The notes: generated by a model not told the origin, from the sequence alone. A stretch of DNA of 64,000 nucleotides from Hyaloraphidium curvatum SAG 235-1 (GCA_025558095.1 JAIVFI010000008.1:248001-312000), one strand, 5' to 3'; shown: positions 5,248-59,380, numbered from the stretch's first letter. Numbers and translations are program-made.

Positions 5248-6722
5248 CTACAGAGGCGTCGCAAACCTCGTCCCGCCAAACTTGTGGACGGGGTTCAGCG
5301 GCGACGGCCGGTACACCGGCAGGGGGTATGTTGGCGTGGCAGACGGGACGGCCGAGAGCGCGTATCCCCTCCGTCCGCCGCGGCGGTTCCGCCTGGCCCG
5401 GGGCGTCAGATCCCGCGCGATAAGCCAAAAGGGAAACCCACCTCGGGTTCCTATCCCGCTCCCTCGTCAGCTTCACCAGGTCCGAGTCGGTGAGATCCTT
5501 GATGATGGGCTCCCAGTCGTCCTCCCGCATCCGGAACCCGTGCCGCCCGACCTCGGGAGCCTGCATCTCGTCCTCCCACGCTATCCGCGCGGCGACCAGC
5601 TGCTCGCGGATGCTGTGCGCGATGGAGGGGACGAATTCGGGGCCGAGCGCCATGTCGGCGCAGAGGATGCGGGCAAAGACCTCGGGGGTGACCTTGGTCG
5701 AGGAAGGCGAGAGGGGGTATTCGAACTTGTCGCGCAGGTGGGTGTTGCCGATTATCAAATCGAGCTGGCAGAATATGAGACGAATTTTAGCTGGGCGAAA
5801 CGGGGTCCGGCAAAGGCAAACGAACCCGAATGACCACCCTCAGCGTGTCCGAAGCATGGTCCACCGTCTTCCTCTCCTCCGCCTCCCCCGGGCTCGGTTC
5901 CTCGTCCGGCTCCGTCCGCTGCACCAGCGGTTCGTCCGGCACCACGGCCCCCTCGGGGTCCTCCGCCACCGCGGGCACGTACGCCGCGCACTGCGCGCGG
6001 ATCTGCGCGACGATGGACTGCACCAGCTGCGCATGCATGGTGGTCTTTTCCATCACCCGGCGGGGCTGGCCGCGCGGGCCGGGGACCATGACGTCCGCGA
6101 GGAGGAGGTGGGCAAAGTGTTCGGGGGTAATGAGGGTTTCTGTGGGCCAAGGAGGAGGGTCAGAGGTCAACCAGCGTCCCCAGTGACATCCGCCTCAATC
6201 TCCGACCCACCGTTGACGTTCCAAAGAAAGGTATCGGAGAGATGGAAGTTGTCGATGTCAAAGTCGATCCGAATGGGGACCAGCTTGACCGGGAGCGACG
6301 CGCACTCCTCGAGCTCGCTCCTCGTGCTGCCCCAGGCGGCCCGTCAGCCCCGCCGCAAAAAACGGCGGCGCGTCCGTAACCCACAAGTACAGGTGGTGGT
6401 TCTTTAGCCGCGCCTTCTTCTCCGAGTTGTACAGCACCATGCCCGAGAACGGCCTCGTCACGCTGATCTCGTCGTACGGGTCCGCGATCCCCGCCATGCC
6501 GCTCGTCTCGGACGTGTACGTGCGCCGCCCCGTGGGCGTGCCGCCGTACGTGTCGTCCTTGCGCGGGCGGCCGGGGCGGCGCTTGGCGGGCTGCTGCCGC
6601 GAGGACGACGAGTCGTCGCTGTCGGAGCCGTCGAAGTCGACCTCGTCGATGTTGACGTAGGCGCCCGCGCCGTACGGGTTGCTGGGGTTCGCGCGCACAT
6701 TGCGCACGGGCCGGCCCGCCAT
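5248..6722 (-). CDS. SNF5-domain chromatin remodelling subunit (Sfh1/Snf5 family), multi-exon
   Basis: LVPIRIDFDIDNFHLSDTFLWN, ITPEHFA, LRDKFEYPL and TPEVFARILCADMALGPEFVPSIAHSIREQL match the two SNF5 repeats. Confidence 0.88.
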
Positions 6723-6863
6723 GGCGGGCTGCAGCGGGGGCACAGGTGTTGGAGGAGCGCGTTCGGACGCGGTCAGCACCCGACCTCCCTCCCGGTGCCC
6801 GTTTTTCGCGAACCGTAGCGTCGATTTGCTTACACCGGGCTCCGGCCCCGCGGACCCGCGACC

Positions 6864-8222
6864 ATGGCCGATTCCAAGGGCAAAAAGCCGAGCGCGGTGC
6901 TCTCGATGCTGGCCGGCGGCTTTGCCGGCGGCGTCGAGGCCACCCTGACCTACCCGACCGAGTGGGTGCCCGCCGTCCCCTCCAACTTCGCCTCCTGACC
7001 AAATCCCATAGGTACGTCAAGACCCAGATGCAGCTCCAGGGCAAGCAGGGCGCCGGCGCCAAATTCAAGGGCCCGATCGACTGCGTCGTCAAGACGGTCC
7101 GGGAGCGCGGGATCGCGGGGCTGTACAAGGGGCTGTCCGCCATGGTCATCGGCAACTCGGCCAAGGCCGGGGTGCGGTTCGTCGCGTACGAGCAGTTCCA
7201 GAGGCTCGTCGCGGGGCCGGACGGGAAGGCGTCGAGCGGGGGGATGATGCTGGCGGGGCTGGGGGCGGGGATGACCGAGGCGGCGCTGGTGGTGACGCCG
7301 ACAGAGACGATCAAGTGGGCAATGCTCTGGCGTTGGCGTGCTGGACGGCAGCAGATTTCTGATCGTGCCCCCTTTTGTGGAACGGCGCGACCCGGACAGG
7401 ACCAAGCTGATCCACGACCAAAACTCCCCCTCCCCCCGCTTCCGCGGCCTCACCCACGCGACGGCCACCATCTTCCGGGAAGAAGGCATCGCGGGCATCT
7501 GGCGGGGTGTGGGGCCGGTCATGGCGCGGCAGGGGGCCAACCAGGCCGTTCGGTTCTCGGCGTACGGGACGATCAAGGATTGGATCTCGAAGCGGTACCC
7601 GGTGGACGCAAAGGGAAGACCGGTGACGCCGTGGTACGTCAGTTTCGGGAGCGGTCGGTGTGCTGCGGTTGTTTGGAGGCCGGTTCGGTGTTTGATTTGG
7701 CGTCGCTCAAACAGGCGTCGTCGCGGGCATTATCACCGTCTACGCGACCATGCCGGTGGACGTCGTCAAGGTTTGACGTTCTTCCACGCCCGCAACAGCA
7801 CCTGCTGACGGCCCGGACCGCAGACGAAGATGCAGTCGCTCGACGGCAAGCAAAAATACGGCAACTCGCTGCGCTGCGTGGCCATGGTGGCCAAGGAGGA
7901 GGGTATCCTCGCCTTCTGGAAGGGGGCAACGCCGCGATTAGGCCGGCTGATGGTGGGTGTCGCTCCAAAGGGGTTGGGAGCGGGTGGGGCGCGGGTGCGT
8001 TCCTTGGAGGGCGCGTTCGCTCCCAATCCTTCCCCTGCTCTTCTACCCCGCCCGTCATTTGAAGCAGGCTAACTTTCGCCATCCCCACGACAGTTCTCTG
8101 GAGCAATAGTCTTCACGACGTACGAACAGATCATGAAGGTGTTCGAAAGCGTGGGTTATCACCGCCGCGGACCGGCCCGACGGCTGATTTCGAAATCTTC
8201 CAACCAGTTAAATTGGACCTAG
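6864..8222 (+). CDS. CTP1: Mitochondrial citrate/tricarboxylate carrier (SLC25A1/Ctp1-like), multi-exon
   Basis: Carrier motifs YPTEYVKTQMQL, TPTETIK and MPVDVVKTKMQS; GNSAKAGVRF and RQGANQAVRF are typical of citrate carriers. Confidence 0.9.
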
Positions 8223-8651
8223 ATAGATTGTCTTGCTGCTCATGGCACGGTGGTGAAAGGTATAGAGGCGACTGGCTTGTGACAATGGGATGGCGCTTTT
8301 GTTTCTTCAGGCGCTCCCACCCTGTCCCTTGTCACGACTCACGACCGGACGTGAAGCCAAGCAGCAGCGGAATCCTCCTGTGCTTCGCCGCGCAGGAGCT
8401 CGGTCCTCTTAGCTGAGCGCACCGGGCCGGATTCCACGGCCGCCGGCCTCCGCCGAGTTCCGTTCCGCCGCCCGCCGCCCCTCGCGGCGCACCGACCGCC
8501 CGCTGATCCGAGGTCTATGAGTGCGTGAGCGCCGCGGCAGCTTCGCCACAGCGCCGCGGCAGCCGCCGGCCGGGGTCTCGGTGGGTGGCGCGGTCGCCGC
8601 CCCGCCGCCAACCGTAACCGTCGCCTCTCCTTTGGCAGACTCCCCCGCGGG

Positions 8652-52232: not shown

Positions 52233-54013
52233 CTAGAAGCACTTTCTGTGAACGATCGATGGCCCGGCGTCGTCGTACTCCTCTTTCGTGATCCACATCT
52301 GCTGGAACGTCGACAGCGATGCCAGGATGGAGCCACCTGCAGGATCCGGAATCTGAGAAGGCGCTCTCCTCTGCAGTGAGCCCGACGCACCAATCCAAAC
52401 GGAGTACTTGCGCTCCGGCGGGGCGACGATCTTGACCATCATGGTCTGCGGCGCCAGCTGCGAGACCTCATAATGCAGGCGCTCTGCGATACCCTCAAAC
52501 ACTGCGTGGGAGAAGAGTTCAGCATCGGGGGGTAACAGCGGCAGAGACCGACCCACTTGTGGTGCCACCCGCCAGGACAATGTTGCCCCAGAGCTCCTTC
52601 CTGATGTCCACGTCGCACTTCACGATGCTGTCGTGGATCATCTGGTGAATGCCAGGTTGTTCCGTTCCGATCAAACTGGGCTGGAAGAGGGCCTGGAGCG
52701 ATCACGACGGGCAGAATGCTAGGACAGAATCGCAGCTCCGATCGACGGCTGGAACACACCTCCGGCGCGCGGAAGCGCTCGTTGCCGACCGTTATCATCT
52801 GGCCGTCGGGAAGCTCGTATTGTTTCTCTACCGCGCTGGAGTCTTGGGTATCCAACAGTTCTTTGGCGAAGTCTGCGCGCGGGTTTCCAATCAGCCCGAT
52901 TCAGGGAGCTCCAAAGGGCACGATTTGCTCACCGAATGCCACGTAGCCAAGCTTCTCCTTTATGTCCCTCACGATCTCGCGCTCGGCGGTGGTCGTGAAG
53001 GAATACCCGCGTTCAACGAGCAGCTTCATCATGTAGTCCGTAAGGTCCCTTCCGGCCAAATCCAGTCTCGTTATAGCGTGGGGCACCGCGTAGCCTTCGT
53101 AGACGGGTATGACGTGCGTCACGCCTTCGCCGGAATCGAGGACGACGCCTTGGAAGGAGGTCGGTGTCGCTCATGGGCAACACATCACGGAGAGGGGAAC
53201 CTACCGGTGTTTCGACCCGAAGCGTACAGGGCCAGCACCCCTTGAATTGCGACGTACATCTCTGCCGGAGAAGGAACGTGAGTCAGGATCTGCGGACGTG
53301 CAGTGCGGTTGGTGCCCTTACGGGGATGGTTGAATGTCTCGAAGGATATTTGGGTGAGCCTTTCCCGGTTCGCCTTTGGGTTCAACGGAGCTTCCGCTGC
53401 CCGGAAGCGGAATGTTAGCGACTCCGGATTATGGGATAGGGGCCGGACCAACTCAAAAGGATCGGATGCTCCTCAGGAGCGATACGGAGCTCGTTGTAGA
53501 ATGTGTGATGCTACCGCAAGGCAATCAGCATGTCGTGGGAGTGCGGACGGCGCAGATACGTGCCAGGATCTTGTCCATGTCGTCCCAATTGGTGACAATG
53601 CCGTGTTCAATCGGGTATTTGAGAACCAGGAGGCCTCTCTTGGCAACAGCTTCGTCCCCGACGTAGGCATCTTTGGTTCCCATGCCGACCATGACGCCCT
53701 GGCGTGCGGAAACCGCGCGATTGTCCGGTTGTTCGTCAGAAGCAAGCGATGGCCCCCTGCGTCGCCGGGGCACGCAGGGTCCACGCACCTGATTCCTCGG
53801 GCGTCCGACGATGCTCGGGAACACGGCGCGCGGGGCATCCTCGCCGGCGAAGCCCGCCTTGATCATGCCGCTGCCAATGTCGATGACGATGGGCTGGATT
53901 CCTTCCCCCTCCTGGCCGCGCGCGCCGGAGATGGCGGCCAGCGCTCCGGCGGCGAGCGCGGCGGCGCGGGCGATGCGGGCGACGCGGGAGTGGCGCTGGT
54001 GACGGCGTGCCAT
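52233..54013 (-). CDS. Divergent conventional-type actin with an N-terminal signal-peptide-like extension, multi-exon
   Basis: [95 protein letters not shown] and IVHRKCF. Confidence 0.95.
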
Positions 54014-54156
54014 CGCGAATGCAGGAGTCGGGGCCGGTATGGGACACGCCTGACGCAGTGGGCCCTGAGCCCGCCAGCCATGCAGGGAGACCTGTCCCCA
54101 GTCCACAGGTTAATCGCACCCCCGCGAACTGCCGTAATCGGCCTTCGGGCAGCGCG

Positions 54157-57057
54157 ATGGCTGGCCGCTACGCCGCGCTGGCCTGCGCGGTGCTCGCCGG
54201 TCTCGCCGCCGCCGCGGAAGCCGCGCGGTGGACGAACATCGCCGTCGCGGGCGTGCCCCCTTCCGACAATCTGGTGGGCCCCTCCCCTGCCCTGTGCCGG
54301 CCCGGATCTGACGTGCGCTCAGGTGGATATTGCATTCAACCCGGCAAACAAGTTATTCCTCGCCGCCGGCCTCCTCGGCAACATCTACGGTTTCTCAGGC
54401 GCTTCCAGGGCCGCGGCAGGGACGCGCAATGGCACCTTTTCCCTGCAGCTGGACACGGACTACAATATCTCGAGCATCGTGAGAATCACGCGTCGTTACG
54501 GCTGCGGAGCAAAGTGGGCTCATTCCCGATCCCAGAGCTGCCCGGTCGCGGGGCAGTGCATCGCCGCCGGAGCAGGCCGGCCCATCTCAACGTGGCAAGC
54601 CGCGGGATGGTCGATCAGGCAGGCGCTTGCGGTGCCAAGGACGTTTACGTTTTCGTACATTGATTGTGTGGACGCCACCTTCTGCGTGGCGGTCGGCGCC
54701 GACGCCGCGCTGGCCGATGAGACCGGCAAAACCGGAGGTGCGTTGTGGTCACGGGCGCGCCGTAGCTCCACTGATCGTTACCGTGCTATGCAGGCCTGAT
54801 CTTCGTGAGAAGGAACGGAACATGGATTCTCTCTCAAGCTTCGATCCCCGCCATGATCGACGTCACTTGCTCCTCCCGCACCGACTGCACGGCCGTCGGC
54901 GACCTGTCCACCGTTTTGGCATTCAACGGCACCAAGTGGAACCGCATCGTTTTCCCGAATGCCACCTCGGATCCTTTCAAGGTCGTGCAGGTCGTTGGAG
55001 ACACCACGTTCATTTTCCGGACCGAGAGCGCCGCAGACGGCGGCACCGTCGCTCGCATTTACTACTACAGCAAGTCTCGCGGGACCTTCGACATGGTGCC
55101 GCCGTCCGTCCTTTCGGGGGTTTCGGATCTCATCAACATCAACTGCCCGACGAAAACCGACTGCATTGCTCTCGGCCTCGACAGTGACGCTTACGGCAAC
55201 GTCATCTGCCGCTGGAAGGGGCCCTCACCTACGGGCTGGACCAGAGGTGGATCGTGAGGCAGTCTGGCGCATCCAGCAACTGACCCACATCGCCCCGTGC
55301 AGATTCGGTGAATGCGACCATCATCAAGGGCATCTTCAACGCCGTGGAGTGCTCGACGCCGTGCGAGAGGAGCATTTCGGACAGATGCTGCCAGTGCGTC
55401 GCCGTTGGCGAACACGGCGTCGCTGCTGTGACCAGACCTACGCTGGTGAGCGGAACCGTTCCACGTTCGTCCTTCCATGCATCAACCCTGCCCTCCCAGG
55501 CCAGGACCTGCCTTTCGAGCAAACCGGACCCCAAGGCGCAGAGGATCCGCAGCGGTCAGCCGTCCGTCACGACCCCGTTCAAGCCCGAGGTTTTCCTCGC
55601 CAAGCAGGCCCTCGACGCGTCCAAGGTACTTGTGCTGGACCTCGGATCGACCACCGTGCGCGCCGGTTACGCCGGAGACGGCACGCCGCAGTTCAGCTTC
55701 CCGAACGTCTACGTGACGCTAGCCAACGGGACGACCCTGGTGGGCCAGCCGGCGGTCGACTTCCGCAGGCCTACCAAAGCCCCGATCGTCAACGGCATTC
55801 TTTCGGACACGTGAGTCGAGAACGGATGCGCGATCTTGCCGCACCGCTGATCCGCGCATCCCAGGCCCGGCCTCGTCCTCGTGATAAAGTACGCGCTCGG
55901 CCTCCTCGGCGTCCGCAACACGGCCCAGGTCGCCAACAAGCTCATCCTTCTGGTCTCGCCACTCAATACCATGGCGGTGCGCACGGCCTTTTCTGCCAGG
56001 ATCATGACCGAGTTCTCCCCCGCGGCGCTCTGGGTGGGCCAGCCCGCGCTCGTGGAGCCGTTCATCACGGGATCGGGTGCGTCTTTGCTCGTCTTCCGTG
56101 ATCGGCTATTGGCTCATCATCGGCTCGGATGTGCAGTCTCGGACGGGACCCAGGCCCTCTCATTGGATTTCGGACAGACCGCGACCGCCGTTCCTGTCTT
56201 CAAGGACAACGGCAACATCTTCACCTACCTGTCCGCGATCAGGACCACTACGCTCGTCGCCACGAACCTGGACGCCTACATCGCCCGCCAGCTCCGCATC
56301 ACCACCACTCAGGCTGCCGAGCTCAAGCAGGCCCGCAACGTGTTCTTTGCTTCCGTCCCCGACGCCGGCGCATCCAGGGGCAGAACGCCGCCCATCGGCT
56401 TCAGGCTCGCCAACGGCACCAACGTCACCGTCCCCGGCGACCTGAGGTGGACGATCCCGGAGGCGATCTTCAGGCCCGGCATCATCGGCGTCAGGGGACC
56501 CGGGTTCGCCGCCATCGCAGCCGCGGCCGTGGCTGCCTCCCCCCAGTCCTACAGGGCCGGGGCCGTGTCCATGAAAATCGTCGTCGCGGGCGGATCCACC
56601 CTGTTCAGGTCGTTCGGCGACCGGCTGCGCATCGAGATCGGCAAGCTGTCGCCTTGGAACATGGTCAGGGGGAACATCGACAACACCCAGGCGCTCCACA
56701 ACTTCACCAACATCTTGATGGCCCCCGGCAGGATCGGTGCCGCGTTCAGGGGCGCCAGCGGGCTAGGCGGTGGGTTGCCGGTTGCCCACCACCGATCGTT
56801 TCCGGCACCCTCGATCTCATCCCTGCCGGCAGCTGCCCCTGCTGCCGACGGACCCGACTACGTGTTCCCGGCAAACTTCAGCGCATCCGGCGCGGCGGCC
56901 TTTGGGAGTGGGTGCCTGCCGCCCGCGGTGTCGCGCTGTCTGATCTCACACCGACTTGCCAGCCGTGTGCCTGCCGCCCAACTCGGCGATCTGCGCGTGC
57001 GACAATGCGCAGGCCTCGCCATGCAGCGTTTCCGGGAGTGCGTGCGTGTGCACCTGA
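54157..57057 (+). CDS. Secreted multidomain protein: signal peptide, Cys-repeat beta-propeller-like region, divergent actin-fold domain and Cys-rich tail; multi-exon
   Basis: Leader MAGRYAALACAVLAGLAAAAEA; five C..CxAxG repeats; actin motifs VLDLGSTTVRAGYAGD, PIVNGI, LDFGQTATAVPV, IPEAIFRP, IVVAGGSTLFRSFGDRL and AFRGAS; last exon TVCLPPNSAICACDNAQASPCSVSGSACVCT*. Confidence 0.85.
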
Positions 57058-57318
57058 TTGGACCGGCGGCGGTCGCCGGGAAGTATGCTTATTGTGGACT
57101 TTGGGCGAAAGTACGTTTGTGTACAACACAGTCACAGAAAGGAACTGTAGGGGCGCTTGTTGGTTGTCGACATGATCGATAAAGAGAATGCATCTGTACA
57201 CGAGTGACGATGGCGGTATCTTGTTACAGGCGGCAGCACCGGCGCGGCTCCTCCCATGCCCCAGACCCTCCTGCTCCCCGCACCCACGCTCCCGCTCTCC
57301 CTCGGGCCCAGCTCGGAA

Positions 57319-58532
57319 TCACTCGCCCCGCTGCCTCTTGATCTTGACCTTCTCCTCCTCCTGCGGCACCACCGCCTCGGCCGGCTGCTGCAACAGCACC
57401 AGCTGCTGCCCGCCGTAGCCCTCCCCCCCGACCATGACGAACTGCCCCAGCCCGCCCAGCCCCTGCACGCCGGGCGACGACAGGGCGTAGAACAGCTGCC
57501 CGTTGGCGCCCTGAACGAGGTACGGCATCGACACGGCCTGGGGCTGCTGCTGCTGGCTGGGGAAGGTGTAGACGGGGGAGTAGTTGAGCGGGGGGGTGTA
57601 GGGGTCGCCGCCGTGCAGGAGCGGGGTGGCCGTGGCGGCAGGTGGCGGGGTGGGGGGCTTGCTGGCCGGTTCCGTCGGGGGGGTGGAGACGGCGGGCGGG
57701 GTGGCGGCGGGGGAGGGCTTGGCGGAGCGGCGCGGCTTGCGCGGCGCGGAGGGAGCCGCGGCCGGCTTGGGCGGCGGCGGGGCAGGCGCGGGTTCGGGGT
57801 CCTCGGGGGGGCCGGCGGCGCCGGACTCGTCGTCCAGCTCCGAGGGGTCCGAGTTGAGGCACGCCTGGATCAGGTTCTTGCCCTGCTCGCGGGTGATGAT
57901 GGGCTGGAGCTTGGGCGTGGCAAATGTGTAGACATGGCCCGTTTCAGAGGCCACCAGCAGCAGGACCTGCGTGCCCGTGAGGGTTGAGAGCTCGTAGGCC
58001 TGGAAGGCGGCGGCAATGACGGGCGAAAAGGAGGCAAGGAGCGTTAGATGCCATTTCAGAAATGAAAAAGGCCTGGCGACGGCCAGCGACCAGGGAGGGG
58101 TGAATCGACCGAGGGCGGTCGGGCTCGCCGCAGCTGTGCCCTCCCGGTGCGGCACCCATCCGCTGCAGCCCGTCCTTTGGCCGCGGTATGCCTCTCCGAC
58201 CCGTTTTCCGCCACCCGGGACCCGAGTCCGACGACGCACCTTCTTCATGATCCCGGCCTTGCGCTTCGAGAAGGTGATGTGCCTGCGGCTCTTGTCGTGG
58301 ATGTACTCGATCTTTATCTTGCGCCTGCCCTGCCTGGCGGGCTTGCCGCCGCCGTCGTCGCCGTCGGACGAGCCCATGTCGTCGTCATCGTCGGCAGCTG
58401 GGCGGGGGTGGGGGTCAGGTGGGCGGGGCTGCCGGCGGCGGGTGGCCCACGTCTGCCGTTCTGCGCGGCGGCGAGCATCTGGTGCGAGAGGTGCGCGATG
58501 TCCTGCGGCTGCAGCAGCGCCTGCTTGCTCAT
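57319..58532 (-). CDS. MCM1: SRF-type MADS-box transcription factor
   Basis: GRRKIKIEYIHDKSRRHITFSKRKAGIMKK|AYELSTLTGTQVLLLVASETGHVYTFATPKLQP. Confidence 0.93.
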
Positions 58533-59380
58533 CGTCTGCGGCGGCCGTCAGCGGATGGCCGGAGGGGCCGCGCCACGCTCGACGGCAGGCGGCGGCGGGC
58601 GCCCGGACGACGCCCGCGCGCCCGGGGCCGCGACGCACCTCGCGCTGGGGGCACCACGGGTGGTTGCGCGGGCCCAATGGGACCGGAGTTCCACGCTCTC
58701 CGAAAGGGAAAAGGCTCGCTCGCTCGCTAAGGAAACGGGGCTGGGGTGAAGGTGGTTGTGAGGCTGAAAACGATGAAAAGGGAAGGAGGTCGCCCCCACA
58801 CACTGCCCCGCCCCAGCAGGGACCTCTCATGGCCTCCAAACACCGGGGAGAAGGGCTCAATCTGCTTTTATCCGTTTGGATCTCTTGAATATGTGGTGGA
58901 GGCGGTTGACGCCGTCAGGGGCGGCCGCGAGGGGCGGCCGCGAGCCGACGGGTTCATCACTACCACCGAAACCGAGGCGCGCAACGCCAAACGTGTTTCA
59001 AATGGCCTGCAATCGATGGCACCTGGTGCCATTTGGCCTGATGGCCCTTCTTTGGACGTCCAGAGGTGAGTTTCGAGTCGGCCGATATCCAGGTGCCCGG
59101 AAGAGCATCCGGGCCGAGTCCATCACCGCACTGTGGGGCCAATCTGCGAATCTTCTCTGCGTCTTTGATCGATTAGCGGTGCCATGGCCAAGTCTCATGA
59201 TACGCCAAGCGCCCGATGCCTTGTCGCGGCACGGCTCAATGAGTTAGCCGCCCGTGCCGAACACCACCGTCTCCCGCTCCGAGCCCCGCTCCTCCCGAGA
59301 CCGGCTCGTTCACGGCCGTTCCAACGCCGTCTCCCGAATTTGCACCCTTCGCCGAGGCCACCGCGCCCCCTCCGCCCGCG

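Follow-up and report, generated by a model that had tools for sequence, protein, structure and literature searches.

Hyaloraphidium curvatum, a monoblepharid freshwater fungus, carries a gene in which propeller repeats are followed by an actin-like domain, raising the questions of whether this is one gene, where its parts came from and in which compartment its product would work. Actin and its relatives are, to our knowledge, regarded as strictly cytosolic and nuclear, and we know of none that works in the secretory pathway; if secreted, the product of this gene would be a first example of the actin fold proper put to new use in a compartment where proteins are oxidised and glycosylated. The locus was analysed within a window of 64,000 nucleotides (bases 248001-312000 of contig 8 in a 32-Mb assembly), which is GC-rich (60-73%) and eukaryotic. 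We consider it probable (about 60%) that the gene is a single, functional and lineage-restricted one, with a product built for entry into the endoplasmic reticulum (ER) and acting along the secretory route, on the cell surface or within the wall.

Propeller and actin domain belong to one spliced gene

The exon model describes a ten-exon gene of 798 residues on the forward strand, from an ATG at 54157 to a TGA at 57055-57057 (Table 1); the range 54157-57057 proposed in an earlier sequence-only reading therefore extends exactly from start codon to stop codon. The introns are of the GT..AG type and 49-63 nt long. The translated model matches P0002, which is publicly annotated only as [quoted passage not shown] and in which all the motifs quoted in the earlier reading were found. 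Its parts follow one another in the order predicted signal peptide, seven-bladed propeller, linker, actin-fold domain and six-Cys tail.

Table 1. Coordinates of the fusion gene, its parts and its divergent neighbour in the window
Feature	Position	Strand	Basis and remarks
Coding region, whole fusion gene	54157..57057	+	Exons joined at predicted splice sites; translation matches P0002 in full
Exons	54157-54273, 54323-54478, 54536-54737, 54794-55246, 55303-55445, 55500-55810, 55865-56076, 56137-56769, 56833-56907, 56963-57057	+	
Predicted signal peptide, residues 1-22	54157..54222	+	Read from sequence; Kyte-Doolittle maximum 2.43
Seven-bladed beta-propeller, residues 23 to ~350	54223..55424	+	Four introns inside; phmmer, AlphaFold, Foldseek
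Linker, residues ~351-395, with many Pro, Ser, Thr and basic residues	55425..55613	+	RNA joint spans intron 55446-55499
Actin-fold domain, residues 396-767	55614..56906	+	Pfam Actin, AlphaFold, Foldseek, alignment on viral actins
Six-Cys C-terminal tail, residues 768-798, and stop codon	56907..57057	+	Contains intron 56908-56962
Head-to-head actin paralogue, ~376 aa, with ~33-residue signal-peptide-like leader	52233..54013	-	RNA joints, sequence
Spacer of 143 bp between divergent start codons 54013 (-) and 54157 (+)	54014..54156	.	Presumed shared bidirectional promoter

Spliced contigs from one public RNA run confirmed three introns (55247-55302, 55446-55499 and 56908-56962). The joint from 55445 to 55500 links the exon of the last blade to the exon encoding the linker and the phosphate-1 loop, and thereby provides the single transcript across 55440-55500 that the sequence-only reading had posed as a check; the gene is thus transcribed and spliced as one unit. 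The RNA data set is small and of low depth, and its contigs miss exons 1-3, so that support for the signal-peptide exon comes from the public model and from the similarity of the paralogues.

Two further copies were identified in the genome, and the junction between propeller and actin domain is conserved in both. A full paralogue lies on contig 24, where the alignment runs from ATG to stop, with none beyond, and the indels sit in predicted introns; the paralogous protein P0001 (830 aa) bears the database name "actin-domain-containing protein". The third copy, on contig 43, is partial and more divergent (38-58% identity) and is absent from protein databases. It has kept blades 4-7, the actin domain, the tail and the linker, the last of these poorly conserved in sequence; a search of the upstream sequence revealed no signal peptide, no blades 1-3 and no upstream exons. 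Codon-wise comparison of the window copy with the contig-24 copy yielded a dN of 0.077 and a dS of 0.44 (dN/dS 0.18), with a dN/dS below 0.55 for each exon and of only 0.02 for the tail exon. The fusion gene is under purifying selection.

These data bear on two rival explanations. The public models are automatic predictions and a concern had been voiced over 55440-55500, so that two genes, one for a secreted propeller protein and one for an actin-like protein, might have been merged in the annotation. This is highly improbable, given the RNA contig that splices the last blade to the phosphate-1-loop exon, the retention of the same junction at three loci and the lack in P0002 of any in-frame Met between the last blade and the phosphate-1 loop, the first Met of the actin part lying about 100 residues further on. 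Scarcely more credible is a decaying, functionless chimera, the remnant of gene transfer and duplication. The confinement of the gene to one species in all databases searched and the low RNA depth would be consistent with decay, but the reading frames are intact in both full copies, the dN/dS is low at a substantial dS, the transcript is spliced, and the Cys residues and motifs are all conserved, even in a copy that is 54% identical.

The propeller and its likely bacterial origin

The motif C-x5-C-x-A-[VAL]-G recurs in blades 2, 3, 4 and 6 (Cys pairs 93/99, 135/141, 184/190 and 276/282), and six further Cys residues are found in blade 7 (cluster 326-341) and the linker, which holds the conserved Cys361. 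An exhaustive phmmer search retrieved 1675 relatives, each matched in several repeats, 155 of them at E <= 1e-10 (best value, 4e-26). The Cys motif, in the form C-x5-C-x-[AG]-x-[GD], was present in 155 of the 157 relatives fetched, and the family consensus reads L-x-x-V-S-C-x-S-x3-C-x-A-V-G ... W-N-G-x-x-W. The family has no name in NCBIfam. Pfam assigned no family to P0002:24-360, the cut-off of Ycf48/PSII_BNR (PF14870) thus not being reached; only some of the bacterial relatives reach it, and their weak Pfam matches are to PSII_BNR/Ycf48, DUF6087 and DUF2510.

For the relatives examined, several observations indicate a bacterial source. The gene contexts were prokaryotic in both cases examined (2/2), and the nearest ESM Atlas clusters were 96-100% bacterial. 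The GTDB relatives of one match came from metagenome-assembled genomes of Acidimicrobiia, Solirubrobacterales, Streptosporangiaceae, Verrucomicrobiota, Chloroflexota and Dormibacterota. The bacterial proteins carry N-terminal signal peptides directly before blade 1, and they share with the fungal protein this position of the signal peptide, the repeat motif and the seven-bladed fold. They usually consist of at least 14 repeats in 600-760 residues and lack an actin domain, whereas the fungal protein has one; the fungal propeller further differs in its spliceosomal introns, in two blades without a Cys pair and in an elaborated seventh blade with five Cys residues.

The AlphaFold model of the propeller, calculated from an alignment of the phmmer relatives, had a pLDDT of 86.4 and a pTM of 0.87. 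Foldseek ranked Ycf48, the photosystem II assembly factor, as the best structural match (TM 0.67-0.74), and the other best matches were also seven-bladed propellers. Sequence identity to Ycf48 is only 14-15%, and in a fungus there is no tie to photosystem assembly.

The sequence-only reading had likened the C-x5-C-x-A-V-G blades to those of secreted actinobacterial proteins, and the family was indeed found in secreted bacterial, largely actinobacterial, proteins. Within the H. curvatum genome, the propeller occurs only at the three fusion loci. Among the relatives inspected, a portion of the 1675 retrieved, the repeat was otherwise seen in secreted proteins from Actinomycetota, Verrucomicrobiota and Chloroflexota; a bacterial origin is therefore likely, and the economical reading is that the introns were gained later. 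Since its blades are otherwise those of secreted bacterial proteins, the gene, with such blades fused to an actin domain, is a chimera, as had been suspected. It illustrates cleanly how domains can be fused following a gene transfer, here a probable one from bacterium to fungus.

A divergent actin-fold domain and its six-Cys tail

The actin motifs DLGSTTVRAG, DFGQT and VAGGST lie at residues 403, 542 and 681, respectively. The Pfam Actin family (PF00022; cut-off 27 bits) was matched with 86.4 bits in P0002 and 93.4 bits in P0001, and a scan up to an E value of 10 returned only Actin, a weak match to FtsA and DUF4394, with none to GDA1_CD39, Hsp70 or sugar-kinase families. Among proteins of solved structure, the closest in sequence was Arp1 (77 bits), followed by actins (48-65 bits). 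By fold, G-actin came first: the AlphaFold model of the domain (pLDDT 78, pTM 0.77) superimposed on it in Foldseek with a TM of 0.84-0.87 and an rmsd of 2.5-3.0 A, in agreement with the actin fold previously claimed; the model leans towards actin because viral actins were included in its alignment.

Individual residues were compared in an alignment anchored on intron-less giant-virus actins. With conventional actin and Arp1 (centractin), the domain shares the four-subdomain fold, the D-x-G-S of phosphate-1, Gln137, the D-x-G of phosphate-2 and the adenosine motif G-G-[ST]-T. The residues retained are D11, G13, S14, Q137, D154, G156, G301, G302 and T304, with the conservative replacements K18R and T303S; those altered are Asn12 (Leu), Gly15 (Thr), Asp157 (Gln), Gly158 (Thr), His161 (absent or Ala) and His73 (Asn). 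Compared with that of actin, the D-loop has lost about 8-9 residues and now bears the conserved N433 sequon (55725-55733), so that the D-loop and His73 regions are shortened or altered, as had been read from the sequence. In addition, phosphate-2 is preceded by an insert of 4 residues, 5 residues are deleted near Lys213/Glu214, and a 13-residue insert with the N720 sequon precedes the last strand. The C-terminal helices, corresponding to the last ~25 residues of actin with Cys374/Phe375, are replaced by the six-Cys tail, and the domain, itself devoid of Cys, stands behind a predicted signal peptide and a fused propeller. The features of filament-forming actin (a full-length D-loop, His73 and the C-terminal helices) being lost or replaced, the domain looks real but not apparently able to form filaments, which accords with the proposal of a non-polymerising protein; the capping role proposed alongside is speculation. 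Judged from the residues retained and lost, nucleotide binding is plausible and hydrolysis doubtful.

The relationship of the domain to named actin-related proteins was assessed in a maximum-likelihood tree of this genome's actins, Arp1-4, other family members and viral actins only, with exon rows merged per gene. The three fusion domains formed a clade of their own (support 100/100), set apart by a branch of 1.8 substitutions per site and with no affinity to any Arp, and their identity to any actin or Arp was 19-30%. The genome contains separate Arp1, Arp2, Arp3 and Arp4 genes. Orthology to a named Arp is thus not seen, and the earlier designation as an actin-related protein in the Arp1-Arp11 sense has to be abandoned, as the domain joins no Arp class. 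Word-based protein searches with the actin domain, which are weak for distant relatives owing to length window and divergence, returned P0001 and P0002 only, or nothing; metagenome scans with a conserved block of the actin domain and with the six-Cys tail yielded no relative.

The tail displays the pattern C-x7-C-x-C-x7-C-x6-C-x-C (Cys770, 778, 780, 788, 795 and 797), and its six Cys residues are invariant in all three copies. Like the propeller, it was found in the H. curvatum genome at the three fusion loci only. The AlphaFold model is of low confidence in the tail and in the insert.

Features suggestive of secretion, and the head-to-head leader-actins

The predicted signal peptide has an n-h-c layout, with one Arg, a 16-residue core of Ala, Leu and Val, and A-E-A next to the predicted cleavage site; the leader of the paralogue is laid out in the same way, with A-D-A at this position. 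Outside the signal peptide, the Cys residues (four C-x5-C pairs, six in blade 7 and linker, six in the tail) are all conserved and even in number, the exception being Cys297, which is missing in the contig-24 copy. None of the three copies has a Cys within the ~385-residue actin domain.

P0002 contains 11 N-x-S/T sequons, as against 5.3 expected from shuffled sequence (P = 0.012), a count close to the ten or so noted earlier, and several of them are indeed in the actin domain (N433, N624/N627 and N720). Those at 433, 624 and 720 are retained in all three copies, once as NGS for NGT. The blade NGT sequons coincide with the motif N-G-[TS]-x-W of the repeat family, a motif that the bacterial homologues carry just as often, and they are therefore not independent evidence for glycosylation. 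The earlier argument that the sequons are an independent sign of passage through the ER accordingly holds for the conserved ones of the actin domain, which fit it, and fails for those of the blades. The predicted signal peptide, the paired Cys residues and the actin-domain sequons fit passage through the ER, and the paired Cys, Cys-free actin domain and conserved actin-domain sequons fit an oxidising, glycosylating compartment. The fusion protein is most likely a secreted or surface glycoprotein, as judged from these sequence features.

A further actin gene is arranged head-to-head with the fusion gene, and the spacer between the two start codons would serve as a shared bidirectional promoter. 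Eight introns of this neighbour, one of them GC-AG, were confirmed by RNA, and a ninth was read from the sequence. Its leader is basic and then Ala/Leu-rich, preceding an acidic actin-like N-terminus. The contig-24 copy shows the same head-to-head arrangement, with a neighbour whose leader is textbook signal-peptide-like. The possibility that the leader is a retained intron was rejected, as no donor/acceptor pair or other intron signal was found inside either leader. The strongly basic leader of the window neighbour could be a targeting signal of a different type, which counts against a secretory reading.

The two leader-actins share with the fusion their genome, the head-to-head order, a signal-peptide-like leader and the loss of Asn12, which in the genome's conventional actins belongs to a D-N-G-S sequon. 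Unlike the fusion actin domain, they are near-conventional, with full D-loop and C-terminus: the window neighbour is 72-83% identical to conventional actin (58-83% for the two together), and both group with conventional actin in the tree, apart from the fusion domain. Neither bears a sequon, and their only Cys residues are Cys285 and Cys374, a pair reported to form a disulfide upon oxidation (PMC4244204). Comparison of exon boundaries revealed no clearly shared intron positions between the fusion gene and the neighbouring actin, a result that is neutral as to common ancestry. No paper on these genes, or on actin relatives that are secreted or bear a leader, came up in a literature search.

Two other interpretations of the protein have to be weighed against a secreted product with an actin-like role. 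The N-terminal hydrophobic stretch might be an uncleaved membrane anchor, or irrelevant, and the protein might act from the cytosolic side, perhaps with a lipid attached to its C-x-C-x end. The tails finish in C-V-C-T, C-L-C-T or C-V-C-R, a faint echo of the prenylation box of cytosolic proteins; this counts against secretion, as does the contig-43 copy, in which neither a signal peptide nor the first three blades are visible. This interpretation is nevertheless unlikely: the n-h-c layout and A-x-A are those of a classic signal peptide, the homologues in bacteria are secreted proteins, the blade Cys residues are all paired and conserved, the actin domain is free of Cys and has sequons conserved in three copies, and the tail can end in either T or R while the six Cys residues are invariant. 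Only slightly less unlikely is a role for the actin domain as an enzyme that hydrolyses nucleotides, or binds sugars or nucleotides, in the lumen or outside the cell, with no cytoskeleton-like or actin-pairing function. Such a role would resemble that of ecto-NTPDases or lumenal Hsp70s, which share the wider actin-like ATPase fold, and the D-x-G-[ST]-T of phosphate-1, with the D-x-G of phosphate-2, is closer to the motif generally recognised for that superfamily than to actin. However, Pfam matched Actin alone and none of the enzyme families, His161 is missing, and such a role would not explain why pairing with a leader-bearing actin gene is conserved at two loci.

Under the preferred reading of a single gene with a secreted or surface product, the localisation, function, ligand, nucleotide binding and partnership that we infer are as follows. 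The bacterial propeller would have been acquired together with its secreted character and would act as a ligand-binding head, for a glycan or a protein. The actin-fold domain has kept the D-x-G loops, Gln137 and G-G-[ST]-T and may therefore still bind nucleotide; having lost two histidines (His73 and His161), the C-terminal helices and most of the D-loop, it would make no F-actin contacts and may be a monomeric clamp or pairing module. Its probable partner would be the leader-bearing actin encoded head-to-head, a partnership to which the gene arrangement points. The six-Cys tail would cross-link or anchor the protein.

More tentatively, and with rather less confidence than in the secreted product itself, H. 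curvatum might possess an actin-family system in the secretory pathway or outside the cell, in which leader-actins, stripped of their sequon and of every Cys but the disulfide-capable pair, are co-expressed from bidirectional promoters with the propeller fusions, which would bind them and, by way of the propeller of bacterial origin, tether them to a ligand of the wall or surface. The fusion genes and leader-actins constitute two small gene pairs and thus a directly testable system. Another actin-like gene, without a leader, is present on contig 12.

Leader-bearing actins and head-to-head pairs

The actin paralogue adjoining the fusion gene has 72-83% identity to conventional actin and carries a signal-peptide-like leader of 33 residues. 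Its only cysteines are Cys285 and Cys374, it has no sequon, and Asn12 is replaced by Ile. The product is a candidate secretory-pathway actin. This gene contains a GC-AG intron (window 53511-53563, minus strand), confirmed by an RNA joint.

A second head-to-head pair, consisting of a fusion paralogue (P0001) and a leader-bearing actin, was found on contig 24 (loci L001 and L003). This second leader-bearing actin is 58% identical to actin, and its phosphate-1 loop reads D-L-G-S-S-T-T-K. The two neighbouring actins share 59% identity and are far more diverged than the two fusion genes, which share 88-89%, a contrast suggestive of gene conversion or of a difference in age. In the public model of P0001 (830 aa), two in-frame introns appear to have been kept as coding sequence; on comparison with L001 they correspond to window 54274-54322 and 54479-54535, and they would explain the model's 32 extra residues.

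Features of the fusion-gene loci and their surroundings
Feature	Location	Strand
Actin paralogue with signal-peptide-like leader	window 52233-54013	-
SRF/MCM1-type MADS-box gene, downstream of the fusion gene	window 57319-58860	-	
Second head-to-head pair (fusion paralogue P0001 and its leader-bearing actin)	L001 (contig 24: 52000-61999), about 5400-8280 and from 8859; L003	- and +, respectively	
Third, divergent partial copy of the fusion gene	L002 (contig 43), 5186-7446	+	

A partial copy on contig 43

The third copy encodes blades 4-7, the linker, the actin domain and the tail, with a Lys/Thr-rich linker containing K-R pairs. Its start coincides exactly with the boundary of exon 4. Neither exons further upstream nor a signal peptide could be identified for this copy, and it is absent from protein databases. 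A pseudogene is one possible explanation, an unrecognised 5' end another.

Alternative and possible antisense splicing

RNA contigs revealed an alternative GT..AG joint (window 55393-55505) skipping 111 nt. The reading frame is preserved, and roughly 19 codons, among them that for Cys341, are lost from blade 7 and the linker. At a depth of 2.2, this joint is covered about as well as the main one (3.1). Within exon 8 of the fusion gene, a spliced joint at window 56651-56702 has CT..AC ends, corresponding to a minus-strand intron. This is a sign of spliced antisense RNA, which may represent a long 3' end of the minus-strand gene downstream. At window 57146-57300 the depth of the RNA contigs rises abruptly to about 250.
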